64,000 nt of DNA, taken from assembly GCF_021028975.2 (NCBI RefSeq), contig NC_059432.1:72416001-72480000 (forward strand), read 5' to 3'. Origin of the DNA: Sphaerodactylus townsendi (Eukaryota). Every line of letters starts with the position of its first letter. Within the stretch, counting starts at the first letter, position 1. Below the pieces are notes generated by a model, which ran no database searches, was not told the DNA's origin, and was given only the letters and a program-made list of their open reading frames with translations. Both the position numbers and the translations under genes were made by a program. Shown here piece by piece: positions 7,826 through 53,300 of the stretch.

Positions 7826-10165
7826 CTACATAGTCCCTTGATAAATCTTGACAGATTAGACATAATGGGCTCCCTTACAAGCAAAAAACCTTAAGATTTT
7901 CAGATATGTACTTTTACTTTCGATTGGGTTTTTTAAACAACGTTATTTTTTCTTCATATCTGGCATAAGAGTACCTTCAAAAGGAATGGAAATAGTTTTT
8001 CTAACCTTTATGACATGTGTTGATATTTCGCTGGACTATCTGTCTCCATACTTGCATTTCAAACCAGAAAGTGACCATCTGAAACTGGTTTCTACACGTC
8101 AGCTCACATAAATATAATGTTTTGAAAGCAAGTATATTTGAAACCTATACTTTTCAGCTCAGGTCTAAGCTTACAATTAAGTGAGCAGCTAAAGACTATA
8201 ATGATACATATAAAGCAGGGTAAAAAGGTAAATACTCTTCCTTTTTCTTGGTCATTTTCTTCAAAACATTTAGCTAATTTTCGCAAATCCCTTTCATATC
8301 CACCAACCCTCAAAATAACCCTACACGCTTCAAATAGCACAGACTAGTAACACAATTACACTAATCTTACTCAAAAGTTTAGAAACATTGAGTTTAGAAA
8401 CATTTAGTAATACAAAAGTTTGTGCATCTGATCTGTAGCAATGGCTCCTATTTCTTCTGGAGGGCCCCTTAAAGATCACTGACATTGCAACTGCTTTTTA
8501 CGCACAACATGCTAGATTCAATCTCCAGCATCTCCTGTTAAAGGATCTGTGACGGCAGAGCTGACAAGTACCCCTGATCTGAGATTTCCATTAGAAGTTG
8601 CTAGTCAAATGCTAAATCATTCTTAGTATAAGGTGCCTTCATATGTTACAACTCTTGTTTTAACAATCCTGGCAGAATGTATCCAAACCTGTTGTGCTCA
8701 GCTGCCCTTTAATTCCATAAGCAGTGCGTGGAGCGACTTCTCTTTCCAACCTCAGCTGGAAAAGAGAAACTTGCTGCAGATATCCTGCAGATTCAGAATC
8801 CACTATTACAGACGTGCAAATTACACCATCCATCTCCTCCTTCATGGACAGATAGTCAGTCCCAAAGTGCTGTGTCCAGAGGAGATCTTCAAAGAGGGGC
8901 AAATTACTGCCCCCAGTCTTTTGAGCGCAGGAAAATGGTAAAGAGGCAACTTCCCCCCCATACCATTATTCCAAACTCAGTCAGGCTTCTGGAGTTCTAA
9001 AAATGCCTTTTCCCACAGCTGCTCTGTGACTGCTGGTCTGGAGAACCCAGATCAACCAAGTAAAAAATGTAACATGTAGTTTGGCCTTGGGCTACAGGGT
9101 TCCACATGAAAGGATGTCCACTGACTGGCTAGACTGATCCTCCAGTTATTTAAAAGACTGCTATGCCATCTTTCCATCAAATTCAGGTTCACCAGGGCAG
9201 TAAACTTTAAAATAAAACATTAAAACTTTTGAGACATTAAAAAGGCCTTTAAAATAAAAATACATAAGATAGTTAAGCAATCAAATAAACACAAAACAAA
9301 TAAATACACCAACACACAAAGACCTAATGAGCAGCCAGAGGCAGAAAAGCCTGAATGTTAATTCCTCACAGAGCCTGGGTGTATGAGTGACAGGCTGGAA
9401 GTAGGTGGAGTTTTAGAAGAAGTTAGAGCTTCTGACAGGATTAGAAAGAATTCAACTCTGGGTTCCAGAGAGAATCATTTTTAGTGTCTGTGAAAGACCT
9501 GTAGTGTTGGTGAGAAGAGAGTCCTGGGGGAAAGTGTCCCTACTCTAGCCAAGGAGGGAATTTACTTCTAGGGAGAAAAAAATTCTAGCACAGGTTCACA
9601 GAGCAAAGCTAGTTCATTCACTTGACAGAACTGAATGAACTGAAAGTGAAAGAGTTGGTATCACAGGAGTATTAACTAGTCAGAAGGAAAATTTACACCC
9701 CAGGTGAGAAAAGAATTCCCTCCCCTAATTCTTTAGAAGGATTTACTTCCAATGCTGTGAAGTGACTCTAAGGTTTGGGATGACTGAAGAGAAAGGGAGC
9801 TGGGAGAATACTCCTTCCTATATAGTTCATATGGCACCAGAGTTAACACATGAACACTGAGTGCTACCTTGGGTTAAATCTGTGAAATATCTTGAAAGTC
9901 TTATCATATTTTAAAGCAACTGCGATCAACTGAAATCTTAGCAATCTGCCAAGGACCATTTGTGCTGAACTATGAAAAAAACCCTTCATACTTGTATATA
10001 AATCTGCTTCTTTCTTTATTACCAATATTCCTTCCTATCCTATTAACCTGAAGTGTTTAATAAAATTCTACTATTTATTTGTGAAACTTTAAAAAGCTTC
10101 TTGTGTGGGTATGTGAGGTAAAAAACAGAGAAAGTGTTCCATAAACTGGTTCATTTATTTTAAAG

Positions 10166-10400: not shown

Positions 10401-11438
10401 CAGATCAGAAGAAAAGAAGATCTTAGGAGAATTAGGGAACATTCTTTGCCTCTGGATACAAGAGCATGGGAATTCTATCCCTCGTGATCTCCTGCCTTTA
10501 CAAGGGCTAGTAAGAATTAGTGAGGGAATGCCAAGCAAAACAAAAAAGTCTTCGTCCACTGGCGAGAAGACAATGATAGAGGGAAATAGACAAATACCCC
10601 TGGGGAGGGAGTTCCAAAGTTTTGTTGTCATGACCAAGAAGGGCCTTTCTTAAGTTACCATCTATCTAGCCTCAGATGGTGGGGCACCTAAAGCCAGGCA
10701 TCTGAAGATGACGTGAATGGTCAGGTAAGTTCAGGAAATAGGCAGCTTTTCAAGTATACTGATCCCAAACAATATAAGGCTTTACAGGTTTATTCCAGAA
10801 CCCTGAATTGGTCCCGGAAACAAACTGGAGCCAGTGTAGATAGAACATGGCAGGAATAATGTGGTCCCTTTCCAGCCTAGGAATGGCCATAGCTGGATCA
10901 GCAGCTGAAGCAGATAAAAAGAGCCGCTCACCACCTGTTTATCAAACACAACACCCGGGCCCAGCAGCAACCTCAAGCTACAAACTTGTTTCTTTGGGGG
11001 ACACAAGATAGAGCTAAGTGTCATCTGCAATTCAGCCCAAATCTCTGGATGACCTCTCCCTCACAGAGAAGCAGGAAGTAGCTCTGCTTTGTTCATCTAC
11101 TCAGGCATATTCAGCAGAGTTCCTTCCCCCCAATTCCTGAGACACACAAAAAGCAGACACATACCAAAACGTTTCCGATGCATTCGCCCTGCTGAGGGAA
11201 CCATGATGGAGCTGGCTGTCACTTCTCTCTTTCAGTCCCTCTCTGTGCTATACGGAAAGCACACAAAGACAGAAGCAGCCAGCCCACCATCGCATATGCA
11301 ACACAGGAAGTCAACTTCCCAGACTTCAGTGTTGAATTTCAATGCAAGAAAAAAGACACGGCCATCACAAGCATTAGGCAACTTTTCTTCCTGGCAAAAA
11401 GGAACCGTGTCTCGAAGCCACAAAACACTCCATCTTAC

Positions 11439-11625
11439 CTTTCTCAGTGCCGGAGAAAATAGAGATGATTTTGTTCCTAGGTTTCTTCTCTTCGGGCACA
11501 GAAGGCAGGGGTTTCAAGCTATGATTAGCACACAACGGGTCTTTGCCTCCTGAACTGAAAATAGTACTGCTCATCCGAACAGGTGGTGCTGGGGGCTTGT
11601 CTTCAAGTTCTCCGTTGTCAGACAT
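11439..11625 (-). CDS. PAK2: PAK2 first coding exon (exon 2; whole exon 11439-11649 including 5'UTR)
   Basis: Translates MSDNGELEDKPPAPPVRMSSTIFSSGGKDPL...IISIFSGTEK, the PAK2 N-terminus; polypyrimidine+AG acceptor at 11650-11651, GTAAG donor at 11434-11438; 187 coding nt, phase 1. Confidence 0.98.
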
Positions 11626-13819
11626 GATACTTAATGGCTAGACAACACACTGAAATGAAAAAGAAACACATTTAGTCTGTACAAATACATCAGTGTAATA
11701 CAACCATCTTACATCTTGTTTTCTCTCCTCTCCTCTTCAATCTCTATGCCAGAGTCAATGCTTTGCCATCTAAAATTTTCTATGGAAGATATCAAGATGT
11801 TGCATATTCAGACAGGCACTGTCCTTGCATATTCAGACAGGCACTGAAACTATTCTGCATGCTTTGTTTTACTGTCCCTTTTATTTGGAAATTCAAACAA
11901 ATACTTATTTCTTTTAGTAAACAGGACAGGGCTTTACGATTCTGCAAAGCTGTTTCTTCTCTGGAATAATTCCAATCTTGAAATGAGTGGGAAAGCAGTG
12001 AAGGTTTTGCAAGACACTATAAAGCTGCATCAAGATAAGACTGGGAGATAAATTGTTGTTTATTTTATCTGTAATGTGTGATTATGGCTTACTCTTAATT
12101 TTGCTTATAGTTTGATCATAATTATTTAGTATGTTGTATATGCCAATAAAAGTTTTCAGTCTTTTCTGTCAATCTGTGTCTTACACCTCTAAAATTATTC
12201 TAGGGGAAACAGACTTGAACAAGCTCAAGGACACTGTGAGCACATAAGATGAAGAACTTAGGGGTCCCAGACTTGGATGATATGTGTTTCCCTTCTCCAG
12301 AGTTATGTATATGCAATCTTTCCATTATTCTACAAGACATCATTGGATGGACACACAAGATTTTTCTCACCCTACTGCAAAATGAAAGGCAGCAGCCTTG
12401 TGAGGGTCCTTTGAAAAAAATGAACTGAAGACTGAGGGATACCTTGCAGTTTAGTATCTTAATTTCCGTGTTAACATTTTTTTACAACCGGCAGGGGGCT
12501 AAAAGCTGATTTATTCCCCAAGGCTTACAAAGTCTTGTAGCCAAAGCAAACTTTTTAATCACACTTCCAATTGCCAATCAGTAGCCCTGCTGGGCCAAAG
12601 CCCCACCCAGCCCCATCATTTTCTAAAAGCACTTGGTAGTCTCCAGGAAAGATGTTGGTAGGGGCTATAGTATCCATATGCATCACATTGGGGGCCCTGA
12701 ATAAAACAAAGGGCATATTCTAAGCTCAGTAGGGATACCATTTTTTCTGGTATTTTTTGGATTTTAGCCTGAAAGTTTCCAGAAAAGCCAAAAAAAGCCA
12801 AATAGCCTTACCAATAAATGGGGTTTTCTTGCTTTTTTTCCCAGATATCCAAAAATGTCCAGCTCCATTAAAAACCATGGGCTCTGGGGACAGTTCTGGG
12901 CTTTGGGGACAGTTTTCAAGGTAGAGGGACCAAATATGCAGCATTGTTGCAGGTGAGTCTCCTTAGAACCCCCAAGTTTGGTAAAGGAGATGCCCCATCT
13001 ATCCAATGAAGTTTTCAATTGATTCTGAAAGATTAATGATACCCCATTCTGAATGCATTTTCTCAATGGACCAGAAAGACTGAAATAACATTTGCTGTTC
13101 CTTAACTTGTTTCTTGTTTTGGTACGCAAGGTCTGTCTAGTTCTTGCATATGAAGGAATGTGAAGCAGAAGATTTATAAATTATACTGGAATTCTAATTA
13201 ACTAATACTGCAGATTGCCTAAAAGGTACCTAAAATAATATTTCAAAATGTTGCCTTGAAAACATTGTAAGATAGAATAGTTTAGATGACTGTTCATTTT
13301 CTTAAACTGTTCAACTTTCCCATCCAAAAAACTAAAAATGATAGAAAGTTTCCTGTATCCCTCCTAATCATTCACCTGAGAATCTGTCTTTCCTCCCTTT
13401 AATGAACACTTTCTCCCTGCAAACTCATTCATAATTCCCCTGATCCCATCTCACCCAAATCAGTACAAAACCAGGATTAAAAGTTATTTAATACAGGATA
13501 CTGAAATACATTTTAAAAGGCACTTAAGCTCAGAGCAGGAAAATATTGCACTAAATAATAATCTCTCTCCAGTGATTTTAAACTGAACCAATTTGCATTT
13601 TATTCAATCCAGCTGCCATGTTGTATTGAGTACATTCAAACCAGATCATTTCTTCAGAGAGAAGCGATTTAATAATTCCAAAACTCTAGTTCCTTTCCAC
13701 CTAATATTCACTATCAATAAGATGAATACAACCTGTATTTGGTCATGCACCAAAAACAGATTCTGAACTTGCAAAATTCAAAGTAAACTATTTGGTACAA
13801 GAACCCTCAAGGATCTCAT

Positions 13820-14340: not shown

Positions 14341-15700
14341 AAGTTCCCCAGCTATCACTAGAAAGGCTAGGCTGCTGACATTGAAGCCAACATTTTACAC
14401 TTTGACTTAATGTTAATGCTGGAGTTTAGGTGAATAGCTGATATCCTACTATGACAACAGCAGTCACATACTTTAGATTAAAAGCATTTATATTCACACA
14501 TTTTAAAGTGCAGGTTGAAACTTCCCCATCAAGAAAGGATGCACAGGTGAGAGAACATCCTTGATTTCTGAAACAGTGAGCACTATAATTAGAAGGGCAC
14601 AAATCAGAGAGCTGACCTTTAATCGAGCAACAATTGCTCTGCGCTGTTTAATGTGAGAGACAGAATCAGTTTCTGCCCAGTTTTCTTAGAGGGGCAGGAA
14701 AGCTTTGGCCTGTGTCTAGACAGCTGGCCCTCCAAGGTAACTTACTTGGCTGCTGTATGAAACCAGAAACAAGACTAGATGGACCACTGGTTTGATCCAG
14801 CAAGACTCTTCTTGTGTTTTCAATACACACAAGTTAAAAGTTTGATACTTCCATCTCTCATACAAAAAAAGCACTTTTCTTTTTGAACTGCCGGCATCCA
14901 GATTTCAAATACTTGTATACTGCCAGCCAGCCAGGCTGCCTTATGCTTTGTCTTTTTTCAACTACAGAGAACTCTCGCCTGTGTCTCAGTGTTTGACAAA
15001 ACTGACCTCTTTCTTTATTGAAGTACCACTGAAAAAGTCTTTTACCAAGACTGCTCATGGTGTAAGAGGAAATCCTCTTATGTATAGTCTTCTTAAAAAC
15101 AGGAAGTGAATTACAGCAAGCCATTTCCAAACACCAAATTAAAATTATGTACAAGATGTAAGAGAATAATGCATAAAAACACAAAATATATCCTTCCTTC
15201 TACATAGCGGCAATGGAATATCTGATTGATTAAGTACTGTCTGACATCCGAACACGCACTTTACATCAGGCAACACAAATGTGTTGAAACAAAACTACAA
15301 ACTAACTATATTAAGAACAGCATTTCTCTAATAGTAGAGAACTTTAGGGCTAGACCAGATTGTCTTAATATCATGGTAAGAATTTAACTGTCTGGATTAC
15401 TAACTATAGCTTTTACTGCCCCCTTCCCCAATTAGTCACTCAATTTCCTGAAGTTCCTAAGCTTCATTCCATTTGTGAAAGGGCATTTTTGCATGCATGA
15501 CATGTCCACAGATTCCTCTTATCCACTGCAGACCCCCATTTTGTAGCCCACACTGCTCCGAAATATCCACCAACCCACAGGAGCTATCTTTCAAGGCACA
15601 CAGCAGATTGCACTAGGAAGGCAGAAATGGTACACACGATGCATAAGATCTACAGTGCTTTTTAGGCTTTCCCGAAACCTTTTCACTGTCTCTGCAGACA

Positions 15701-16684: not shown

Positions 16685-18800
16685 GGTACTTACCTGTAAA
16701 GGGTTCTTCTCATCTGAGCAGAAGAGGACATCTGGGTGTTTTCCAGTAATCAGTCAGGGAGGCAGGAATAAATTGTTCTTTTGCCTCCTAGGTCTGCTGG
16801 AACACACCCACTTCTCCTCCAGTTCTGGAAACTCCAACAAGCAGTCTCATGCTGCAAATTGGAAAACCAGTGCTCTCTCCCTGAAATTAGCACTTAGAGA
16901 GGACTAGCGAGAAAAAATAAGGAAACACAAAATACAAAACACGAACAGAAGAAGCAGAAGCAGAAGAAGAGTTGGATTTATATCCCCCTTTCTCTCCTGT
17001 AAGGAGACTCAAAGGGGCTTACAATCTCCTTTCCCTTCCCCCCCTCACAACAAGCACCCTCTGAGGTAGGTGGGGCTGAGAGAGCTCAGAAGAACTGTGA
17101 CTAGCCCAAGGTCACCCAGCTGGCATGTTTTAGAGTGTACAGGCTAATCTGAATTCCCCAGATAAGCCTTGTGCCAGTATAACTACTCTTTGGGGTGCTG
17201 TGGATTTGGACAAAAAAGAAAGAAGAAAAAAATTCTTGTTGCCTATGAAAGGCTTAATTAATCTTAGGCACGAAGGTGGGATCAGTTCTGAGAACCACCT
17301 TATCCTTGTGGAAGATGCATAAGGACGGTTTAACAGACAGAGCACTCAATTTGGAAACTTGTCAAGCCGATGTAACTACTATTAGAAAGATGGTCCTCAT
17401 CCTAAGATGTTTTAGGGAAATGCCTGTCATTTGCTCAAATGGGGAAGTAATGTCTGGTGGGCTTGTCTTTGAGATGAGACACCTTTTGATATGAGAATGT
17501 AATGTACTCCAACTGTCTAGAATAGATCATGGACCACAGAAGCTATGACTGCCACCTGCCTGTGAAGTGTGACAAAGCAGAGACCAGAATCAAATTCATC
17601 CTGAAGGAAGCCTAAGACGTCCCTAATGTCAGGAGCAATGGGATCTACCTTTTTTCTCCAACACTACCTAATGATGGCCTTCCAGGGGGTGTTATAGCTT
17701 CTCCTTGTAGATGCTCTTCTGGAGTTGAAAATCAAGTTGGTAATCTCCCAACTGTTATTTCTTGCGAACAAGATCCCCCATTCAATCTCCACATGGTCAA
17801 GCTCTACCACTCTGGCTCTGTGTGACATATAGGTCCTCGATGTAGATCTTTGGTCTGAGGAAAGAATGTTGAAAAAACTATGGACATTGTGGCCACCAAG
17901 GAAGTACCAGGATCACCTCCACCTTCTCCTCTTGAATTTCTTTAGGAGTCTGGGAATAACCTGAAGTGGAGGAAAGGCATACAGAAGTCCTAGATAGATA
18001 ATGCAGCCATTGCTTCCGCCTCTCAATGATGAAACTGCAAAAGAAATCCAGGTGCTTGGTTGTTCAGACTGTATGCAAAAAGATTTAGGACTGGTGTTCC
18101 CGTTTGTTGTGAAATCTGAAGGAAGGCCTCCCTCTTAGAAACCATCCTTCGGAGAAAGCTGTTGTCAACTCAGCCAGTATGCCTGGATGTTGTGTTTCCC
18201 CTGAATAAGCTCTGCAAGTATGGGCAACAGGTGTTAGTTCTACCCAGGAAGAGATCTACCCCACTTCCTTTGAGAGCATTGAGGATTTGGACGTAAGAGT
18301 CATCCAGCTGGGGTTGGAAGTACTAAAGCACTAAATAGATGGCGCTCAGTTCCAGAAGACTGAGTGGTAGACTGGTCTTGAGAGACGACCAGACACCCCA
18401 GACTGGAAGATCCTCCAACATTGTCCCCCAGCCTAAAAGGCAAGAATCCATGAAAATCTGTTTGGTGGGGCTGATCTAAAATGATTTCCCTTGATTCAGA
18501 CTGAATCACTTGATCCAGGAAAGGAGGCTGACCTTGACTGGACAAGGCATCACCAACGACAAGTGAAGTTTGTTGATAATCTGAAATTGGAAAGGGCTGA
18601 TGAACCGCTGAAGGGATCTGGAATGGAAGCGTCCACATTAAACCACTTCTGAGCAAGCAATAAGAAGTCCCATCAGGCTGCAGGATAGGCGGGAGCTCTT
18701 CCTGCTGTTTATGACAGCTAGCATCTGCTCTTCAGCTTTAGCTGCTTCTTGGCTGGAACAAACAGTTTGCACACTGATGCATCCGACAGAAGCCCCAAAT
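16685..18800 (-). mobile_element. Decayed DIRS1-like (tyrosine recombinase) retrotransposon, interrupted by a SINE
   Basis: Minus-strand translation near 17900-18100 gives P.LNLFA and GLLYAFPPLQVIPRLLKK..VILVLPWWP, motifs typical of the DIRS RNaseH/MT region; multiple frameshifts; boundaries approximate. Confidence 0.7.
16950..17168 (-). mobile_element. Squam3-like SINE (3' part) inserted in the DIRS remnant
   Basis: (GAA)n tail + gagttggatttatatcccc...; matches other copies. Confidence 0.85.
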
Positions 18801-29011: not shown

Positions 29012-29285
29012 AAGTACACTCTAATCTGGAGAACCGGGTTTGATTCTCCGCTCTGCCACTTGAGCTGTGGAGGCTTATCTGGGGAACCAGATTGGCTTGT
29101 GTACTCCAACACATGCCAGCTAGGTGACCTTAGGCAAGTCACAGCTCTATGAAGTTCTCTCAGCCCCACCCACCTCACAAGGCATTTGTTGTGGGGGAAG
29201 GGGAGGGGAAGGAGCTTGTAAGCCCCTTTGAGTCTCCTTACAGGAGAGAAAGGGGGGATATAAATCCAAACTCCTCTTCTTCTTC
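29012..29285 (+). mobile_element. Squam3-like SINE
   Basis: Matches the other four copies. Confidence 0.85.
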
Positions 29286-31821
29286 CACATTGCCCTTAGC
29301 TCATTTGAGGATGAAAGGAATAAACTGACAAACAAAAATGTTTTAGTGGTATAACAGAATCTGATAATTCCGTGCTCCCATGAGTCCAAACACTCAGAAA
29401 GTTACCTATGGCAACTGTTCGAGAATATTTTTTTTCCAAACTGGATAGCTGTTCTGAGAAATCTGCAATTTTCTTCTAATGGTAAGTAAAGTACAAAATT
29501 GAGCAGAAAAAACAGTATTTTCCTTAAAAGATTCTGTATCATAGTAAATCAAAACAAACAATCTTATTCAAAATGAATTTTGCATGAAATTGCCTATGTA
29601 TTTAGAAAATTTGTGGCGAGTTATCTTTTTGTGACTCAAATGTCTTGACTTCTGGGCAGCCCATGCAAATAATGCAACATCTGCGGCTTTCAGTTTTACA
29701 CCTCTGCAAAAATATTCACACAGAGGCAAAGCTGTTTATTTCTTATCACAAACATCTAAAACTGTGCAACAGTTGGCATATTCTATACAACTTGAATAGA
29801 TCTCAGAATCAAATTTTCCAAGTTTTTCCAATCTTCTGTTTTGAAATTAAATTTTAAAAATTCATTCTAAACTGTTTCATTGCAAATATATTTCAGGGCA
29901 ATGAAGATATGTTTAAATACTGTAGCCTTGAGAAGAACATGGTCATTTCACAGCTTGCTCTTACCACAGGCATTCTGCTTTAAAATCTGCATTCTAGAGG
30001 TCAATTCAGTTTCTGTCTACACTATTCTTCCTACATGCCAAGAAGGGCAGAGAGAGATTCCCGAACCACTCCCAGCCATTACCTGAAGAACTGTGTGAAA
30101 TGCAGTCTAGATCATGACCCTATCTTTGCAAATAGAAATGTATATTATATCAAAGCACAATTGACCACGTAGGTAGGAGTAATGCCTTCTCAACATAGTT
30201 ATGAAAAGCTGAATAATTAACCCACAAATATCCAAGACTCAGTCCTATATCCTTTTCCATAAACCACAGGAGCAATTCGGAAGGTCAAGTATAGTTTTAA
30301 ATCAGTTTTAAGGTTCATCAGATCTTGTGAACTTACACTTCCTGCTAGCTCACACAGACAAACAGAACGTGGAAAAACAGCTTGAAGTTAAGCAAAAAGT
30401 CCAGTGCTTCTGCTTCATCAGCTGGCAATAAACACATTCTATCTGTACACAATACTCCCTAAGAAATAGAAATTTATATTATATCAAAGCACATATACAC
30501 ACTAGAAGGAGCCTTCAATCCCCTACTATATTTCAAAGCTTAAATAATAACCTACCATAGAACTACAATTACTTTAGATTCTACCGTAAGAACTCTCCCT
30601 AGCACAGTAAAGTTAAACATATTATTAGTGTTAAATTATAAGACTGGAGGGGGGACACATTACCAATAGCTCCAGTAACCCTGTGCAAAACTGCCAATGC
30701 ATGTGGCTACCCCCTGGAGAAACCAACAGTTATGCTACCTGCTCACCTTCTCAAGGACCTGAGGAATGGATGCAACATTTTCAACTGCGCCCAGCAAAAT
30801 GGAAGAGTGATGGGGGTAAAAAATTCCCTTCTTTCTCTTCACAGAAGGTGATCAGGATCCAGGCAATACTTTCCTATTATTAGAGAATACGAGTAGATCT
30901 GGCAAAGTGAAGGGCTCAAAATGCTGGTGACAGAACATTTTCACCAAACCCAAACCACAAGCAACTGGGGTTCGAGGAAAAATCCCCACTTGACAACACC
31001 ATTTCTGCTTCATGATCCAATTAACAAAAGGGGGAGAGAGGGGACACAGGCAGCGCCATATCACCACCTGCACCAGCATCTCCCTCCCTACCATGTAATA
31101 CTTAGTAATAGCAACAACTATATTTGGGTTGGGTAGATCTGCACTTGAACCCTCCCTCATCAGGAAGCTCCTCTCAGGACCCTAAACTACTCATACACAC
31201 CTTAACCTCCCTCGCTGAGATCCCTGGGGGGAAAAAAAAGCATAAGGCATCCAGGAGAAAAAAGAAAGAAAGAACATTAACACCAGGACCCGGAGTTCAC
31301 AGCAACAACGGCAACTTATCTTACCGGTAGTAATAATAACGTCTTTAGAAACTTCCCCCAAACCTCGCCACTTCTGAAATGGGACGGTGAGGATTTCTTG
31401 CTCCACTTGTGAGCAGGAGAAGGCGCCGTTACCCCAACGAGACTGCGATGAGGAAAAGTATCCGGGTGCAAATGGGGGGGGGGGGTGTCCCTAGAGCTGG
31501 AGGTGCGACCTGAGCCCCTGGGTGCCCCTCCAGTTCCAGGTAACCCCAAGCCTCGGGCAGACACAGCGGCGGCCAGGCGGCCGCACTTGCCTCCACACGT
31601 CCTCAAGCCACCTGCCCGCAACCCACCCGTCAGGGTAGCCACACCTTCTCCTCCCTTCCCTTCAGAGGCCCTGCAGTCTCCTTCCGAGACCTCCTCGGCC
31701 GCTCGACTCTGCAGAGAGCCCGACTGTCGGGGCCCCGGCAGCGCCCTCTCCCGCCCTCCCATCAGCGCCTCTGGGTCCGACCCTCCTCCAGCCAGGCCCC
31801 CTCGAAGCCCCCCCTGCTCAC

Positions 31822-32030
31822 CAAGCACCGGCCCGACTTCTCGCCGCCGGCCTGAGCACCGCTTGAGGGCAGGGCGCGGCCTCCTATAATGGCGGGGAGG
31901 AGGACCCACCGGGCGGCCTGAGGGTGAAGCGGAACCGCCGCGCGTGGCCCAGCCCGGGAAAGGAAGAGGTGGAGCCGGGCAGGCGGCTCCTGGTGCAGAC
32001 AGCGGCGCCGAAGAGAGGGGGAAGGGAGAG
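31822..32030 (-). other. PAK2: Probable PAK2 non-coding exon 1 (5' end approximate)
   Basis: Inside the CpG island ~20 kb upstream of exon 2; TTG|GTGAG donor at 31817-31821 on minus; PAK2 normally has a non-coding first exon. Confidence 0.65.
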
Positions 32031-32435
32031 AGGCGCGAAGACTACAGTCCCCGTCATGCATCTGGAGCGCTGCGGCGCAAGGCTTCCCCGAGAAGGGATC
32101 GCCGCCGCAGGTCTTTCCCGGAAGAGAAAATGTGGCTGTGTGTAGTTGGGCATTTGATCACACGCGCGCGCCGCTCCCCCGCTTTATTAGGATAATGTGC
32201 AGATTCTCTCGTTTTCTTATGACTACTGTTGTTAATTATTCTCCGCTGGATCATGTCCCCATTCCTTATCTCTTACAATTTAGGCATCCTTAGGACTGTT
32301 TAGCAACCATGTTGACATATTTATTGTTGCACCGACCAAAGTCAAGGAAAACCCAAGAAACAACTTCAATAAACATAGCGGTTCGCTGAAAACTTGCGGT
32401 TTTAAAACCGAGGCTACCTTTTCCCGCGGAAAAAA

Positions 32436-32490
32436 ATGGCTGACGGAGCAGGAGCAGGCTGCTCGAACGAGACAGAGAGCGCTTCGAAAG
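32436..32490 (+). CDS. Exon 1 of transposase-derived gene (MADGAGAGCSNETESASK)
   Basis: aaaATGG strong Kozak context; 55 nt ending AAG|GTGAGA, a consensus donor; phase 1 matches the acceptor at 33360-33361 and reads in frame into the 450-aa ORF. Confidence 0.8.
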
Positions 32491-33361
32491 GTGAGAAACA
32501 AGGGGGGGGGGGGGGAAATGCTATAGGGGCTATTTTGGAAGTGAAATATAGTGGAGGGAGGGGAGAGAGGGGAAGATGAGAAGCCTCCCCCCTCTATCAG
32601 CCCTTACCAGTACTTCGCTTGTGTATGTGTGTATGAAGAAGAGAATCATGTACGCTGCTTAATGTTTGCCTGGAGTGGCTAACTGTTTGAAGAAGACTCC
32701 TTTTACAGCTGCAAAGACATGAAGTCCGGGGGGGGGGGGGTCATATTGTATTTCCTTCCTTAGGAATTAAGGGTGGAAAAAAAATTGCAGACTACTGAAC
32801 ATCTTTAGCCTGTCAGTCATGCTGATCCTGTGGCACAAAGGCAAGGCATTGCATCCCCTGAGGTTCTACCCTGCCAAATCTCCAAAATCTACATTCCCAA
32901 ATCTCCAGGAGATCGGATTTGATCTCTCAGATTTGATTTCGTTTTAAGACAGTTGAGAACTGTCTTCAACTGATTCAAGGCGGCAATTGAAAGTTTCTCA
33001 TACCCACTCTTGTCAGGGAACCTTGCTGAGTGACATACTCAGCATGGCCTATTTCATTTGTTTCTCCTTCAGACTTAATGATTACTTTCATGTTATTAAT
33101 TGAGTCAATAGAGATAAGTGTTGGAACACACTATTTTCATTGCCCAGCAGCAGAACCTTTTGTAATCTATACAGGTTCATAAATTAGCCTCTTAGACTAA
33201 ACTTCCTTTGGCTTGGTTCTGGTATTATGTTCCCTAATCTTATATTCTTAATGGGAAAGGCAATGTGTGTGTGTATGCATGTGCGAAGCTCAAACAGAAA
33301 CAGATTGGCTATTATGGCCACCATAGTGTTGAATAATAATTTCTTTTCAAATGATTTTCAG

Positions 33362-34749
33362 ATGCTGCAGAGACCTCTCCTCGCTGTTACTTCAAATTGA
33401 ATCGCAGAGGTCGGACAATTCGAAGCCAGACTCAGCAAGTAATCATGAATGTGTATTCGCGCATTAGGGAAGAGCACCCAAGCCTTACTGTCGAGGAATG
33501 TGTAGAAGAAACCTCGAGATTAACTGGCATGTCTTCTGCACCCATCTACAGGGCAAAGAAGCTGTGGCACACAACAGGTGGAGTTCTTCAGACGCCAGGC
33601 AAGAAACGTCCTCGCAAATCCGGGACAAAGAGAAGAGATGTGAAGTGTGACAGTTTTTCTCGCTGCGCAATTAGAGGTATTGTACATAAGTATTTCTTCA
33701 GAAACGAGCCACCAACACTGAAGAAAATACTCAATGATGTCAACAGCGACCAGGATCTACCTTGCATTTCCCAAACAACACTGCACAGCATTTTGAAAGA
33801 CATTGGCTTTGCCTACAATCGCAGGCATAAGGATTGCACTTTGACTGACAAGCCTGAAATTATAGCTTGGAGGCACCAATACCTGAGAAAGATTCGACAG
33901 TTCCGTTCAGAGGGAAGGAGCATTTTTTTTCTGGATGAGACATGGGTGAACACAGGACACACAGTCCCAAAATGTTGGCAAGATCATGCTGTGAAGTCAG
34001 CGAAGGGTGCATTCCATAGGGGCTTGTCTACAAGACTCAAAGATCCACCTGGCAAGGCCAGTCGCTTGATTTGTGCTCACTGTGGGAGCGAGGAAGGCTT
34101 TGTGGAGGATGCATTGCTTCTGTTTAAGTCGAAAACAACAAGCGATTACCATCAGGAAATGAATGTGGACAACTTTGAGAAATGGTTTGCCGAGTTGCTG
34201 CCTAAGCTGCCTCCAGAAAGTGTAATTGTGATGGATGACGCCTTTTATCACTCAGTGAGGTCCGAGACGATCCCAACAACTAAATCTGGAAAGGAAACCA
34301 TTAGGACATGGCTAACAGAGAAGGGCATCTCTTGGGACCACGAGCAAGTGAAGCCTGAGCTACTGCTTCTGGTGCAAAGGGAAAAGCACAGATTTGTTCG
34401 GTATAAAACAGACGAGATGGCTGTTGCTGCTGGGCATAAAGTGCTTCGCCTCCCTCCCTACCACACGGAACTGAACCCCATAGAATTGGCATGGCGTTAC
34501 ATAAAAGGACATGTGGCACTTAACAATAACACCTTTAAACTGGATGACGTGAAGAATTTATTCGTGGAAGGAGTACGTGCAGTGACCCCAGAGATGTGGA
34601 GCAGTTTCATCCAGCACGTGATGGAGAAGGAGAAGCAGTTCTGGGATCTTGATTTTCTCCAGGAAAACAATGAAACTTCCTCAATAAAGATCTCTCTGGG
34701 GTCAGATTCTGAGAGTGATTCCTATGAGAGTGAGGATATTTATGAATAA
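33362..34749 (+). CDS. Exon 2: intact IS630-Tc1-mariner DDE transposase with DD82E spacing (Sailor-like); spliced product 480 aa
   Basis: Uninterrupted ORF; HTH-like N-terminus, NLS-like PGKKRPRK, motifs FLDETW (D 33934), VMDDAFYHS (D 34234), LPPYHTELNPIELAW (E 34483); 82 residues between second D and E; acidic Ser-rich tail; ttttcAG acceptor; AATAAA at 34745, 34791 and 34810. Confidence 0.92.
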
Positions 34750-37716
34750 ACACAAGTAATTTCTGTTAATAAGTGAATGAACATTTAATTAATAAATCTG
34801 CCTGTTTTGAATAAAAAGTGTTGTTTAAACCTATTTTAGTTGATTAATCTCATTTAGCTTAACCCCATTTCCTAATTCCTACACATCCAGTCCCAGCAAG
34901 AACCTTTCTGTTGCTTCGTACTGTCCATATTCCATACTCTCACTCTCTGCTCCTTAGAGTTCAGTTCAGCATTTTCTTTTTTTATTCACCGGAGGGGGTG
35001 GGGGTGCAGAATCCCACTTGCTATGAGGGCAGGTTCCTTTTATGGCTCAGCCTGGTTTGGCTGGGGACCCCTGGGAGGAAGACTCAGATGGAGAGGTGGG
35101 GACAGTTTTGGTTCCAGATTCTCAGGCAGAGCAGTCAGTAATTCCTGCAGGACCAGAGGCTCAGGCAGAGCATTCAGGCTGGGATCCATAGCCAGGTCCA
35201 AGCTCTGAGATTTTCCAGCCAGGATCTAGTTCTGAGACTCTTCAGTCTCTTGATACTAAGCCAGAGGGGCCCCTGCTAGCTCTGTCCCTCCCCCCTCCTC
35301 CCAGTCTCCAGAGCCCCAGGAGCAATGCAGGAGGAGACTGCATGTTAGCAGCTATGGGGCAAGCTGAATTGCAGGAGCCAGACTAAACTAAGCCAGATAC
35401 AAGAGGTTATTGCACTATTGAATTGTTAGGCTGGATCTAACCAAGAGGTTGCAGCTGAGCTAGCTTGTAGCAGCAACATTGTGGTTCAGTTTTCAGGTCA
35501 CTGTTTCTGTTTCTAGCCTTGTCTTGGTTCTAGACTCTGTGTACTCATTAAATGACTAAACCCGCTAAGAACTGTGTCTTTGGATGCTGAGGACCTATCT
35601 AAAACAGTTCCCTTTGACATCTACCATCCCTCAACGCAGTAGCCACATAACCATCTTCTGGTAGGGTGGGAGGAAGATGATGGTGAGAATACAGCAAAAT
35701 GGTGTATTTGGAAATATGAAAAATTCACCAAACCCCCACCCACCACCCCAAGAAGCCTCTGTTTTTTTATGCTGACCCCTGTCCAATTAGATCCAGTTAC
35801 AGTTCAAAACACCATCCGCCCCAGTGCCTGTGCTCTGAAAAATGTAGGTTTCTGCCTGGTTCTCCTCACAGTGCCATTGTATGGATAATATTGGGAAGAC
35901 AGAACTATGTATATGGCCCGGAGTTCCTTAGATGGAATAAAAAACCAGTAGATTTGCAGTTGGCACCTGGAGTTCAAACACATATGGCCCTTGCATATAA
36001 CAGGGCACTTAAATGGTAAAGTGCAAAGTTTTCAAATAGCATTTTATGCTAATTTTAATAACAGTTTACTGCTGAAAAGGTGGGATGGGGAGGGAAGGAA
36101 GAGTAGAATTATGATCAAAATGATTTAACAGCCAGATCAAAAATGAAAGGCCCCAACTCCCAAATTTCTGATGTCAAATTGCTTTTGCCAAAGCAAAAGT
36201 TTGTGCCAAAGCCCTGTTGGAATAAAAAGTAGGATGCTGTTTCTGTGGGACTGACTAACACAAACAAGTTGCATCTTCTCAGAAGGATCCTGTTACTATT
36301 TGACAGCTGATCCCTCCTTTTGAGGTTTCACAGAGCTGCCAGGGACAGGTCACGGATAAACCTTTTCTTCTGGTGACGTTCTTTAGGAAGGGCTTCAAAG
36401 ACTCAGCCGCTTTCATCCAAGTGGCTGCCTTGTTAAAGATAAAAACAAAAAAAGGCAAGTGCCCAGTTTTATTGGTTAATAATACAACCACAAAGGCCAA
36501 AATGTATCTCTGACCAGGATTTTGTGCACTCTGGGCTTCAATTTTCTACCTTACCGGCTTTTAATAGTCATACAGGACTACCATGAGCTTAAGACAGTGA
36601 ACCTACATCCTTCAGCTACTGGAAATTCAGCTGTTCTATTTTTCAGCAGCTTATTGCCCATGTAACTATATAAACCTCACAAGGGCTAAAAACTTTTCCT
36701 TTTATGAAATGGAAGCTGAGAATTCAAGGAAGGTTAAATCTGTACCTAACACCATTTCAACTATTATTCTTTTTTGCAGTCCTGCAGGCTCACAGCTCTG
36801 AATCTGGTATTTGCAATTCACCCATCCCATTATCTGTGTCAATGCATTTAAAGTAATGATTCCCAAAACTTTTTGAATTGTAACCCCCTTGGCTCCCAGG
36901 CTACATACCTCCCCACCCCCCACCCCCCCCACACACATGAACACACCTCTTCATTTAGCATTTGTGACAGCAAATTGATTTCTGTTCTAATTGATACCTG
37001 CCAGGCCATATTGACAAAAGTTAGGTCTACACTCAAGTGAAAGTAATGGGTAGACCTGGCCTCCACAGAGGACAGATCTACCCAATGCTCCTTAATGGGG
37101 GATAACCAGCCCTCCAAGCGACTGCAGTTCTCTTTGTGATTCTTCAGAGATGTCATATTGAAAAGGAAAAAGACATGTGCGTGGTATTGCCACGAAAAAC
37201 AAAGTTTATTGATTTAATTTTTATATTGTTTGGACCATCAGCTGAATTGCAAGCACAGGAAACTCCTGGTAACATTCAGCAAATGGCTCTGGAGGCTACT
37301 GAAGCAGACATAAAATGGTGGGTGCTAGAAACACTAGGACCCGCAGAGCACTGCTCTATAAAGAAGGTCCAGAAGGAAGTAGTAGCATGTTAATTGATAG
37401 TCGCCCTTGGATTTTTTTGTTGTTGAAAATGGTATAGTCAAGGTGAAGAAAATAAAGGCCTGAAGCAAATTACTCATTCCACATTAGATATGTTCCACTG
37501 CATACAAGATTGTATTCACTGGCCTCTGCGAACCAAATATAATTGATTCAACATCCATGAGTCATTGCTAACATAGAGAAAGCAGTACACACTTTTCTTC
37601 AATGATAATCAATGACCAAAAAGCATGTAAACATTTAAAACCGCCCTTATAGATACAGTTGCATAGGTCCAATATTTGAGGGAGGAGTCCCCAAAATTCC
37701 TGTAAGATAAACTCTA

Positions 37717-38478
37717 TAAGAACATAAGAACAAGCCAGCTGGATCAGACCAGAGTCCATCTAGTCCAGCACTCTGCTACTCGCAGTGGCTCACCAGGTGC
37801 CTTTGGGATCTCACATGCAGGATGTGAAAGCAATGGCCTTCTGCAGCTGTTGCTCCTGTACCTGGTCTGTTAAGGCATTTGCAATTTCAGATCAAGGAGG
37901 ATGAAGATTGGTCCAAGCCCTTTTTAAAACTATCTAGGTTAGTGGCCATCACCACCTCCTGCGGCAGCATATTCCAAACACCAATCACACGTTGCGTGAA
38001 GAAGTGTTTCCTTTTATTAGTCCTTATTCTTCCCCCCAGCATTTTCAATGTATGCCCCCTGGTTCTAGTATTGTGAGAAAGAGAGAAAAATTTCTGTCGA
38101 CATTTCCTACCCCATGCATAATTTTATAGACTTCAATCATATCCCCCCTCAGACGTCTCCTCTCCAAACTAAAGAGTCCCAAACACTGCAGCCTCTCTTC
38201 ATAAGGAAGGTGCTCCAGTCCCTCAATCATCCTTGTTGCCCTTCTCTGCACTTTTTCTATCTCTTCAATATCCTTTTTGAGATGTGGCGACCCAGAGACT
38301 GAACACACAGTACTCCAAGTGCGTGTCAGCATTCCACTGCTTTATACTAAGTGGGCATGACAGGGTTCTTTTCTGCAGTTTTATTATCAATTCCTTTCCT
38401 AATTATCCCCAGCATAGAGTTTGCCTTTTTCACAGCTGCCATGCACTGAGTTGACATTCCCATGGAACTATCAACTAA
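37717..38478 (-). mobile_element. CR1 LINE 3' fragment, same family as 47397-49895
   Basis: IEKVQRRATRMIEGLEHLPYEERL..RRLRGDMIEVYKI; near-identical 3'UTR and AAGAACAT tail. Confidence 0.92.
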
Positions 38479-50713: not shown

Positions 50714-51162
50714 TGATGTAGGGATGAGCCCCGTGAACCCAGCAGAACCTCAGAAAGAGCGCATGGAATGCCTGTGCCATCTGTGTCCTTCTGGGCGCAC
50801 ACGCTCACCCATCCCCCAGACCCCCCGTGAGTCACAGGTCATGAACTACCTGACTCACGGTCACCAGGTGTCCCAGACAAAGGGACAAAGGGGCTCTTGC
50901 CCCCAGGTATGGATTAGACCCAGACGCGAACGTTTCCTCTCGCACGTAGACAACCCCATGATGTCATGTATCATATGATATTCTTCCGCTCTCCCGCCTC
51001 CCATACACGCCCCTATTGTAAACCCTAATAAAAGGTGCCAGGGACTAGCACACGGGAGAGTTGCCAGATCCACGGATCGCGCTTCCTGCCGCTGGCTCTC
51101 TCCACCGGATGATATCACTGCGTCTCACCTCTTCCTTGCGACCCCTGCGGGCCGACTTCACA
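50714..51162 (+). mobile_element. Candidate solo LTR
   Basis: ~450 bp CpG-rich block starting TG and ending CA, internal AATAAA at ~51027 followed by U5-like sequence; TSD ambiguous. Confidence 0.55.
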
Positions 51163-51345
51163 GTATAAGCCATTTTTTATCTCCACTGGGATAAATAAAT
51201 CAGCAGATGAAAGTCTGGAGTGTCAGAGTAGGAGATAAGTGTCCACACCTATGATACTTATTATCTGAGGCTATTTTACTCTATGCATAGAATCTAATAA
51301 CAGACTTCATTGGGACCGCTCCACAGCACAAAACACTTATATGTG

Positions 51346-51445
51346 TTGTATACCGCCCTACCCCCGGAGGGATCTGGGCGGTGCACAACATAACTTTACA
51401 TGTCGTGCACTGCCCAGATCCCTCCGGGGGTAGGGCGGTATACAA
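51346..51445. repeat. 46-bp-arm inverted repeat built from LINE/SINE-tail sequence, followed by (TCAA)n
   Basis: 51346-51391 pairs with 51400-51445 with two mismatches and an 8-nt loop. Confidence 0.9.
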
Positions 51446-51698
51446 AACCCAATCAATCAATCAATCAATATACACATACATCTTAATGCAAACAAACTGA
51501 CTGAATATGCAATGCAAGTTAGAAAACAGTTAAAGTTAATGACATCAATACAGAGCACGAATGTAAACACATTAAATCAAAATTACAGTATTTATACCAC
51601 TACTCAGCATTGTACAACAATGCATTCCAGACTCTAACAAATTAGTGCTTCATGCAGTCTGCTTATTAGCTATAGAAAAAAAGGAGATTTTAACTTAC

Positions 51699-51786
51699 AT
51701 ACGTGCTCTGGCATGCAAATTAAGAACATAATCCAAAATGAGAAGACACTAAGCCAAAGGAGCACATTGTTCTTCCACTGAGACAT
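51699..51786 (-). CDS. PIGX: PIGX first coding exon (signal peptide; exon 51699-51798)
   Basis: MSQWKNNVLLWLSVFSFWIMFLICMPEHV hydrophobic leader; ttttttccttgcag acceptor and GTAAGT donor; phase 1 matches next exon. Confidence 0.82.
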
Positions 51787-52290
51787 TTCAAAATAAAGCT
51801 GCAAGGAAAAAAATCGCATTATATGCCTAGCAGTTATTGCCTCAAAGGATAAAGCTCTTTTTGTCAAAACTGCATTTTTATAATTTAGATCAACCCTCCA
51901 CTGTTTGACTCCCATGAGCAGAAGAGATTAAGCACAACTATCACTTTGTTTTGATCCGGCACATACCTTCAGCCCATGATTATATCAGTAGGCTTTTGTA
52001 CTAACTTGGAGACCCCACATTTCCGAATGGTGCTAGAATACTGAGAAATGTGGGAACTGTTCAGTGATCGAGAGATCAAATTCCCTGTTAAGAAGCCCCT
52101 TGAAATACAATTCTCAATTAATTCAGGATTGGTGCTTTCAAATAGCCACAGAGGTGCATTCAGACATGCTTTATCCGAACAAGATTAGTCAAGGCATATT
52201 TAGGGTGTTGAGCCCAACAAAGACAGCTTGCAATCTTAAAAAAAAACCCAGCTTGAGTGAAACGAAGTGCACTGAAACCTACACAAGTTT

Positions 52291-52489
52291 TGTCGAAGGT
52301 TTTCACAGCCAGATTCAACTGGTTCTGGTGGGTTTCCTGGGCTGTGTGGCCATGGTCTGGTGGATCTTGTTCCTAACGTTTCGCCTGCATTTGTGGCTGG
52401 CATCTTCAGAGGTGTATCACTGAGGGAAGTCTGTTAAACAAGATCCACCAGACCACGGCCACACAGCCCAGGAAACCCACCAGAACCAA
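52291..52489 (-). mobile_element. Short Penelope-like insertion with hammerhead (52372-52412), inverted arm and 12-bp target duplication
   Basis: Same core as 18941-18981; 52437-52488 is the reverse complement of 52320-52371; CTACACAAGTTT at 52279-52290 and 52490-52501. Confidence 0.8.
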
Positions 52490-52559
52490 CTACACAAGTT
52501 TCTTCCTCATGGTGGAAGCAGGTTATATTCTATCAAACAAACCTTCTCTCCTAAATGCT

Positions 52560-53300
52560 CACAGCAAACTAATCTGAAAGCGGAGACAGTCAGAGCATCT
52601 TTCCACCACGAGAAGCGGCTCTAAACAAGACCTCCAGGCGTCTCCCTCGCTGCACCAGGTTAACCAGATGGAAGCACCTTCCCGGCGTAGCAACTGTCCG
52701 GTGTAGCAACTGTCACTTCCCACAAAGAGATTCGACCTTACCTCATACACGCGCCGCCTTTTCCGCGCACGTCTAAGGCCCCCGTTTGGGACTGTTCAAC
52801 GCATGCCTGCTTGGAAAGACCTTGCCGGTAAGTGAGAGATTTTCTATAGCAACCCCCATCTGATTTTAATAAGATGTCAAACAAGGTAAATAACAGACGA
52901 TATTTAAAATCTTCGTAAGATCTTTTTATATCTTGTGGGCATTTGTGTAGTGGGATTACTGAGGGGCCTGACAGGGCGACGGCGCAGAACAGTTGCTATG
53001 GTGATGAGTCCAAGGAGGCAGAGGCAGTTTCCGGCGTAGACGTTTGTGAGGAAGATGCAGGTCTTGTTATCTCAGGTTAGTTAGTGTGTGTCTCTTATTT
53101 GTTGTAGCGTCTACTGTACGAGCGAACACAGTCAAATTACTAGGCCGGAGCTGTGACTTTGGCCTCTTCTACACCCCCCTCCTGCCCCGTTTCGGAGCGC
53201 AAATCCAAGATATAGGTAAACAAGGGAGTGCATAGTCTAAAACTCTTACGCTCTTTAGATAGAGCGAGCAACCTGATCGGCTCACCCCGCTTCAGAAATA
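52560..53300. promoter_or_regulatory. CpG-enriched bidirectional promoter PIGX/CEP19 with candidate non-coding first exons
   Basis: Local CpG enrichment between divergent genes; minus-strand donors at 52737-52741 (GAG|GTAAG) and 52558-52562; plus-strand donors at 52828 (GTAAGT) and 53076 (GTTAGT). Confidence 0.75.
52992..53005 (+). promoter_or_regulatory. RFX X-box (GTTGCTATGGTGAT) upstream of ciliary gene CEP19
   Basis: Close match to X-box consensus GTTGCCATGGCAAC; further TAGCAAC half-sites near 52687, 52704 and 52847. Confidence 0.7.

Follow-up and report, generated by a model that had tools for sequence, protein, structure and literature searches.

The transposase gene next to PAK2

We analysed a 64,000-nt stretch of the genome of the gecko Sphaerodactylus townsendi (contig NC_059432.1, positions 72,416,001 to 72,480,000), hereafter the window, whose 235 N were left as they are. 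At 33397-34749(+) it contains an uninterrupted open reading frame (ORF) of 450 amino acids, which we take to encode a transposase of the Sailor superfamily and to belong to a gene that the host has probably retained. The ORF is 100% identical to the NCBI gene LOC125437708 (P0001, 480 amino acids), which spans 32436-34749(+) in two exons (Table 1) and is located on a 115-Mb scaffold of GCA_021028975.2, between PAK2 and PIG-X. P0001 residues 1-18 map to exon 1 at 100% identity, and the 30 additional N-terminal residues of P0001 relative to the ORF derive from exon 1 together with the 5′ extension of exon 2 that follows the acceptor (ttttcag, then ATGCTG) at 33362. The database protein P0001 served as the spliced product for searches and folding, and the exons were handled separately. 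This gene and its four paralogues in S. townsendi carry the NCBI label 'uncharacterized protein' only.

Sailor transposases have a DD82E catalytic triad with a spacing range of 78-111 residues, and their D-E spacer holds two inserts of 13 and 36 amino acids (Shi et al. 2021, PMC8533490). Their three motifs are I/VVYLDET, VIIMDNA and HCELNPIEL, whereas Tc1/mariner proteins have VLWSDES, IFQQDNA/D and SPDLNPIEN (PMC8533490). An earlier sequence-only reading of the window had proposed a Sailor-superfamily transposase with the triad D(33934)-99 aa-D(34234)-82 aa-E(34483), and our recount returned exactly this arrangement. Counted on the annotated protein, the triad is D210, D310 and E393, with 99 residues between D210 and D310 and 82 between D310 and E393. 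The motifs of the window protein (IFFLDETW, VIVMDDA and YHTELNPIEL) match the Sailor consensus. D310, the first D of 'MDD', aligns with the Asp of 'MDN' both in the arthropod relatives examined and in three paralogues; the second motif reads VIVMDNA in these three paralogues and VIVLDSV in P0121. The 82-residue spacing was found in most of the 124 homologues fetched, in five of five gecko copies and in the arthropod relatives checked.

A Pfam profile search for DDE_3, which the same reading had suggested as a check, gave a match to the window protein above the gathering score (E 4.7e-9), and the NCBIfam IS630 transposase family matched with E 1.4e-17 at a score under the family cut-off. The long insert that had been noticed between the second Asp and the Glu was borne out, since 128 residues of the window protein cover 84 positions of the DDE_3 profile and three extra helices are predicted there. 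An AlphaFold model of P0001, built from 83 family members (predicted local distance difference test score, pLDDT, 85.9), comprises two three-helix bundles with a basic linker and an RNase H-like core, with the three additional helices lying within the D-E spacer. Pfam HTH_29 and HTH_Tnp_Tc3_2 gave weak matches in the DNA-binding region, and the protein ends in an acidic Ser/Asp/Glu tail. The best Foldseek matches of the model in the PDB were full-length Mos1 mariner, the catalytic domain of Sleeping Beauty and the transposase domain of SETMAR. Together with the profile matches and the spacing common to most homologues, this shows that the triad did not arise by chance.

The best non-gecko matches are arthropod 'Tc1-like DDE' proteins of 420-530 amino acids, which are 40-49% identical over 90-100% of the length and collinear with the gecko protein over their full length at E about 1e-105 to 1e-130. 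They come from species in the list of Sailor hosts, which includes Acyrthosiphon, Myzus, Ixodes, Rhipicephalus, Araneus and Diabrotica, with transposases of 420-460 amino acids (PMC8533490, Table S6). P0036 from Rhipicephalus sanguineus matches the gecko protein with E 3.9e-114 and 44% identity and is almost residue-for-residue equal to Ar-Rhimic, the R. microplus reference in the published alignment (PMC8533490, Data S2). Sleeping Beauty was reached by the family profile at E 8.5e-5 only. Because the spacing, the three motifs and the homology at E ~1e-114 to a near-copy of Ar-Rhimic agree, we accept the window protein as a real, full-length Sailor (DD82E) transposase from among the IS630-Tc1-mariner (ITm) elements, in keeping with the sequence-only reading; this assignment is drawn from these sequence features rather than from a tree of the other ITm superfamilies.

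The same evidence bears on the alternative of a protein from a different ITm group, be it Tc1, mariner, pogo, Gambol, Zator or IS630 proper, whose 82-residue spacing is a lineage-specific insertion. Our tree of 119 proteins covers homologues only and therefore leaves room for this view, as do the Pfam result, which names DDE_3 only, and the sub-threshold NCBIfam match. We nevertheless consider it very improbable in the face of the full-length collinearity with proteins of listed Sailor hosts, of arthropod relatives that are equal in length (~440-470 amino acids), spacing and motifs, and of one match that is near-identical to a Sailor reference while Sleeping Beauty lies so far away.

Table 1. 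Coordinates of LOC125437708 and its protein features in the window, and of the exons of the paralogue P0002 in its own locus (L001)
Feature	Position	Strand	Details
CpG island	31500..32250		GC 0.66, CpG observed/expected (o/e) 0.75; ~0.2-0.9 kb upstream of the LOC125437708 start codon
Exon 1	32436..32490	+	55 nt: ATG and 18 codons (MADGAGAGCSNETESASK) and first base of codon 19; GT donor at 32491 (gtgag)
Intron	32491..33361	+	871 nt, gt...ttttcag
Exon 2	33362..34749	+	P0001 residues 19-480 and stop; whole transposase-derived body; tblastn 100% identity; contains ORF 33397-34749
Bipartite helix-turn-helix DNA-binding region (predicted)	33424..33801	+	two three-helix bundles (P0001 residues 40-89 and 116-165), basic linker TPGKKRPRKSGTKRR; AlphaFold secondary structure
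First catalytic Asp, D210	33934..33936	+	motif IFFLDETW; column nearly invariant
Second catalytic Asp, D310	34234..34236	+	motif VIVMDDAFYHS; column invariant
Sailor-specific insert in D-E spacer (predicted)	34291..34428	+	predicted helices 329-338, 349-362 and 367-374 between strands 4 and 5; DSSP, pLDDT mostly >90
Catalytic Glu, E393	34483..34485	+	motif LPPYHTELNPIELAW; column nearly invariant
Short 3′ untranslated region (UTR)	34745..34815	+	three AATAAA: 34745-34750 (overlaps stop), 34791-34796, 34810-34815; conserved in intron-bearing paralogues
P0002 exons (L001)	10001-10015; 12841-12972; ~13636-13743; 14492-14575; 16911-18308		from annotation; 12841-12972 KRAB A box (Pfam KRAB); 16911-18308 transposase exon

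Five gecko copies, and a window copy without terminal inverted repeats

S. townsendi has five copies of the gene on five scaffolds, namely P0001 in the window, P0002 (locus L001), P0003 (L002), P0121 (L005) and P0122 (L006), where P0121 and P0122 are long isoforms taken instead of the short isoforms P0004 and P0005. The copies are 70-83% identical in amino acids and all five retain D, D and E. In the tree they form one clade (SH-aLRT 100) with a stem of 0.5 substitutions per site, nested in a clade of support 96 with tick, spider and leafhopper sequences.

By structure the copies fall into two groups. The window copy, L001 (P0002) and L005 (P0121), which make up group A, share one splice acceptor, the final 150-200 nt of the intron and a short AATAAA-rich 3′ UTR. 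The conserved intron end corresponds to 33166-33361 in the comparison with L005 and to 33213-33332 in that with L001, and the window copy and L001 remain collinear for ~1.7 kb downstream at 70-83% identity. L002 and L006 (group B) are intronless, and ATGGCTGATGGAG runs directly into the ORF. Homology of the window copy to its paralogues stops at differing points in each flank.

The opening ~20 nt of exon 1 (AAAATGGCTGACGGAGCAGG) reappear at the start codons of L002 and L005. We rejected the idea that the 5′ UTR of copies with terminal inverted repeats (TIRs) gave rise to the conserved 3′ part of the intron or to the DNA preceding exon 1, as local alignments against L002 and L006 were no better than shuffles (z <2); of the similarities seen, the ~20-nt start-codon block alone stands. 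The intron may have been inserted into the ORF; alternatively, the intronless copies may have arisen as retrocopies and then undergone 27-30-nt in-frame deletions.

Sailor transposons typically have TIRs of 23-57 bp and a TATA (or TA) target-site duplication (PMC8533490). The L002 copy is flanked by a 26-nt inverted repeat (9752-9777 and 11617-11642), in which 23 of 26 positions are complementary and 14 nt are perfect; a TA adjoins the 3′ arm, and another lies two bases outside the 5′ arm. The L002 terminus, TA followed by CTCTGTTCC, is similar to TATA followed by CTCTGTTCAGC at L004, a ~2.2-kb TIR element that codes for the closest non-gecko protein. Judged from these ends, the L002 copy looks like a structurally complete Sailor transposon. 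P0003 occupies L002:9750-11642 (CM037628.2), a 1.9-kb segment with an unbroken 469-aa ORF and a CpG o/e of 0.96.

P0002 (LOC125428705, 569 amino acids, L001:10001-18308 on CM037616.2) is annotated as a fusion of KRAB and the Sailor transposase, in which four upstream exons are spliced onto the transposase exon via the group-A acceptor. This predicted fusion hints at a role as sequence-specific repressor for one or more of the copies. Downstream of P0002, from 25107 of L001, lies a KRAB-like neighbour with near-identical KRAB-linker exons.

A CpG island is present 0.5-1.25 kb upstream of the start codon in the window copy, L005 and L006, and each of these three copies faces a host gene head-to-head. 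A neighbour on the opposite strand has its 5′ end 0.7-0.9 kb from the start of P0121 (L005:9000-10001) and of P0122 (L006:8750-10001), across the CpG island; these neighbours are a CCDC90-like gene and a 573-aa gene, respectively. In the window, PAK2 lies upstream and the PIG-X gene downstream of LOC125437708, which therefore sits in host DNA, head-to-head with PAK2. The island in the window is a putative shared (bidirectional) promoter region of LOC125437708 and PAK2, to judge from its position and composition.

The sequence-only reading had implied that the window holds a copy of a transposon, which is not what we found: the locus is a gene without TIRs, annotated as spliced and located beside a putative promoter, and one of five paralogues under purifying selection. 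No inverted repeats bracket the window gene, as only short pairs of low identity were obtained in 31000-37000 (seed 9) and in 32000-35200 (seed 8). The L002 TIR motif was not found near the window gene, and its three loose matches elsewhere are far off and at chance level. Without TIRs, the locus is accordingly better described as a Sailor-derived gene than as a Sailor transposon. In DNA run X1 (organism A, presumably the source species), the depth was ~50-80 in the intron and flanks, which is about single-copy, and only ~1.5-6 times that value in short conserved segments of the ORF, so that the family is low-copy.

Several further features of the window were recorded. The first coding exon of PAK2 lies at 11377-11637(-) and encodes MSDNGELEDKPPAPP... 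(PDB 9m41_A match, E 7.8e-35). It is ~20 kb away from the CpG island, so that the first intron of PAK2 would be long and its first exon, inside the island, would be non-coding. A second CpG-rich stretch, at ~50800-53000, has a CpG o/e of 0.55-0.64 when measured over 1.4 kb at a time, and may be the promoter of the gene that follows in the PIG-X / CEP19 region. The intron of LOC125437708 has long poly-G runs at 32494-32512 and 32727-32738, and one same-species contig has an additional G at 32727, perhaps because the run varies in length or because the sequencing slipped.

Repeats are also present around the gene. At 35014-35549 there is a very high-copy repeat, with a summed contig depth of ~10,000-65,000 compared to ~70 in the flanks in a same-species DNA run. 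It is likewise high in three other organisms and shows many internal joints, and is thus probably a SINE-like (short interspersed element) or composite repeat. A dispersed repeat at 29019-29285, with a unit of ~265 nt, occurs in both orientations at 74-88% identity at all four paralogue loci, including directly after the P0002 stop, and another at 37712-38478 recurs in L002 and L006 with up to 97% identity.

Selection, related organisms and transcription

Pairwise ratios of non-synonymous to synonymous divergence (dN/dS) among the five ORFs are 0.13-0.20, with bootstrap upper limits of at most 0.27, at a synonymous divergence (dS) of 0.45-1.04. On the terminal branch of the window copy we counted 30 synonymous vs 15 non-synonymous changes (omega 0.12, P 9e-12), and omega on the terminal branch of every gecko copy is 0.11-0.21. 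When the window copy is compared with L001, identity is 86% in the ORF and 70-79% in the collinear non-coding flanks. The window ORF is thus under purifying selection, and the gecko copies are old, each having been preserved intact separately.

The sequence-only reading had also remarked that the ORF is richer in CpG than the surrounding DNA and had linked this to a foreign origin or protection from methylation. The difference itself holds, with a CpG o/e of 0.52 in the ORF compared to 0.18 for the intron, 0.11 for the 2 kb that follow downstream and 0.21 for the remainder of the window; in the ORFs of the paralogues it is 0.52-0.96. As the copies are old (dS 0.45-1.0), coding constraint and a position close to an unmethylated CpG island account for this richness better than a recent foreign origin does.

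Nine sequencing runs of four organisms (A-D) contain the stretch, and the runs of the three organisms besides A contain 12-56% of the sampled 31-mers of the locus together with some pieces of the private intron and flanks. In organism D (run X9), a more distant relative than organism B, one contig covers 33711-34759 (1049 nt) with 59 differences (5.6% divergence) and no gap. The 30 changed codons listed comprise 14 synonymous and 16 non-synonymous changes and no stops, and the synonymous share exceeds the neutral expectation. Isolated locus-specific pieces of the intron are also present in this organism. The claim that the gene resides in a vertebrate is hence supported: its scaffold is a chromosome-scale one of S. 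townsendi, PAK2 and PIG-X flank it there, and the DNA runs of four organisms contain it.

In raw RNA of organism B, a related species (run X10, of which 6% was read), reads fell on exon 1, at a depth of ~1-2, and on exon 2, whereas the depth was zero in the intron (32602-33271) and after 34746.

Proposed origin, probable host retention and significance

Sailor has been described as 'absent in vertebrates' (PMC8533490), a statement also made by the sequence-only reading, which had proposed horizontal transfer from an invertebrate (arthropod prey or ectoparasite) into the lizard germ line. Among the 120 matches listed, with scores down to 367 bits, there was no other vertebrate protein, and the neighbours in the ESM Atlas were arthropod, nematode and rotifer clusters, with no chordate among them. 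Horizontal entry is favoured because a single vertebrate clade lies inside arthropod diversity and no other vertebrate was among the matches listed. The data are therefore consistent with horizontal entry from an arthropod-type donor, which we infer to be the most economical origin. Since the closest non-gecko protein is only 49% identical, the donor cannot be named and the entry must be old.

A recent transfer from an arthropod, or contamination of the assembly by prey or an ectoparasite, might be suspected from relatives that are arthropod, ticks included, and from an ORF that is richer in CpG than its surroundings. This explanation is already contradicted and is highly improbable. The closest non-gecko protein is too distant, the gecko stem too long (0.5 substitutions per site) and the dS between paralogues too high (0.45-1.0) for a recent event. 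A contaminant is moreover hard to square with the position of the gene on a 115-Mb scaffold, where PAK2 and PIG-X flank it, with its vertebrate-style intron and with its occurrence in the DNA runs of four organisms.

In our view, the window copy is quite probably a domesticated, host-retained transposase gene that stems from an old horizontal entry. By this account, a Sailor transposon, arthropod-type by inference, would have entered the Sphaerodactylus lineage in a single ancient event and left five surviving copies on five chromosomes. The window copy, which is without TIRs, would have lost its mobility and gained an intron and a 5′ exon. It lies ~0.3 kb from the CpG island upstream of PAK2, where it would be transcribed, and purifying selection preserves it. 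The domesticated product would still bind DNA via its predicted helix-turn-helix domains, and it may still cut DNA because the triad is conserved in the five copies.

The main rival to domestication is a Sailor lineage that is still active and autonomous at very low copy number, in which purifying selection would act among elements for transposition competence, and not for a host function. Five of five copies with D, D and E and the full DNA-binding and catalytic architecture speak for such a lineage, as do the intronless L002 copy, with its 26-nt inverted repeat, its TA and a terminus like that of L004, and the three copies beside CpG-island promoters, a common landing zone for DNA transposons. 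An active family would, on the other hand, leave young near-identical copies and many decayed ones, whereas each copy here is unique and has no near-identical siblings, the depth of the flanks is about single-copy, and all terminal branches are long with omega 0.11-0.21. The window copy, in addition, is without TIRs, and its locus and private intron are present in related organisms at a few percent divergence. We therefore regard an active lineage as unlikely, though distinctly less so than the recent transfer or the assignment to another ITm group.

Several observations nevertheless weigh against domestication from an old entry. Other geckos have no annotated homologues, which fits poorly with a dS of 0.45-1.0 between the copies; the mismatch could stem from loss, from gaps in annotation or from a dS inflated by CpG. 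An active transposase, too, would retain the triad and the full set of domains, and L002 has TIR-like ends, so that the family may not be fully retired from transposition. Among the RNA reads listed from X10, at the coverage given above, there was no read across the junction of 32490 and 33362, and the depth on exon 2 stems in part from paralogues, as loose ends of the reads spell P0121 sequence. Expression of the gene is thus supported, and splicing only indirectly, through the annotation, the restriction of coverage to the exons and the conserved acceptor.

For the family as a whole, a wider proposal is that a single Sailor entry was followed by several co-options, with a splice acceptor, gained at the 5′ edge of the ORF in one lineage of copies, making the transposase a cassette for host exons. 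Copies would then have come to lie by the PAK2 and CCDC90-like CpG-island promoters and downstream of KRAB exons, and would make up a young family of host genes that bind DNA and are catalytically intact, the first in vertebrates to derive from the Sailor superfamily. We put this proposal forward tentatively, at somewhat less than even chances.

The gecko proteins share with Sailor transposases the DD82E spacing, the D/D/E motifs, the two-part insert in the spacer, a paired-like DNA-binding domain and direct sequence homology, and with 450-480 amino acids they are close in size to the arthropod Sailors (~440-470). They differ in their host, as none of the hosts reported is a vertebrate (PMC8533490). 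The window copy, furthermore, has no TIRs or TATA duplication, contains an intron and a 5′ exon, lies beside a putative host CpG-island promoter and shows the evolutionary pattern of a host gene. The gecko family comprises ~5 copies, whereas Sailor elements number tens to hundreds.

SETMAR/Metnase is a domesticated Tc1/mariner-type transposase gene, and KRAB-transposase fusions such as KRABINER were reportedly described by Cosby et al. in 2021. The window gene resembles this type in that its transposase ORF is probably immobile, under purifying selection and putatively expressed from host regulatory DNA, and its model fold matches the transposase domain of SETMAR. As in the KRAB-transposase fusions, P0002 is annotated as spliced to KRAB exons via an acceptor at the 5′ edge of the transposase ORF. 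In contrast to these cases, the source of the gecko genes is Sailor, and not mariner, pogo or hAT, the full DDE triad is present in all copies, and the genes form a small multigene family which is, as far as the searches show, restricted to one gecko lineage.

Precomputed matches of Pfam PF27940, 'C21orf140-like', are present on the gecko and the arthropod Sailor proteins, and human C21ORF140 (FAM243A) has been predicted to be a DDE-superfamily endonuclease (PMC11377751). From this Pfam label and the published prediction, the vertebrate gene C21orf140/FAM243A is a candidate for an older derivative of Sailor-like origin. Any such relationship would be far more remote than that to the arthropod Sailors, as the 120 matches listed include no protein of this kind.

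The five gecko copies are a clear counter-example to the absence of Sailor from vertebrates stated in the only systematic survey of the superfamily (PMC8533490), and thereby extend its host range. They are gene-like rather than decaying relics, being intact after a dS of 0.45-1.0, spliced by annotation and adjacent to putative promoters, with one of them annotated as fused to KRAB. The family thus offers a compact, datable case of transposase capture in a squamate, in which all intermediates are found in one genome: an intronless copy with TIR-like ends, intron-bearing copies by putative promoters and a predicted KRAB fusion.

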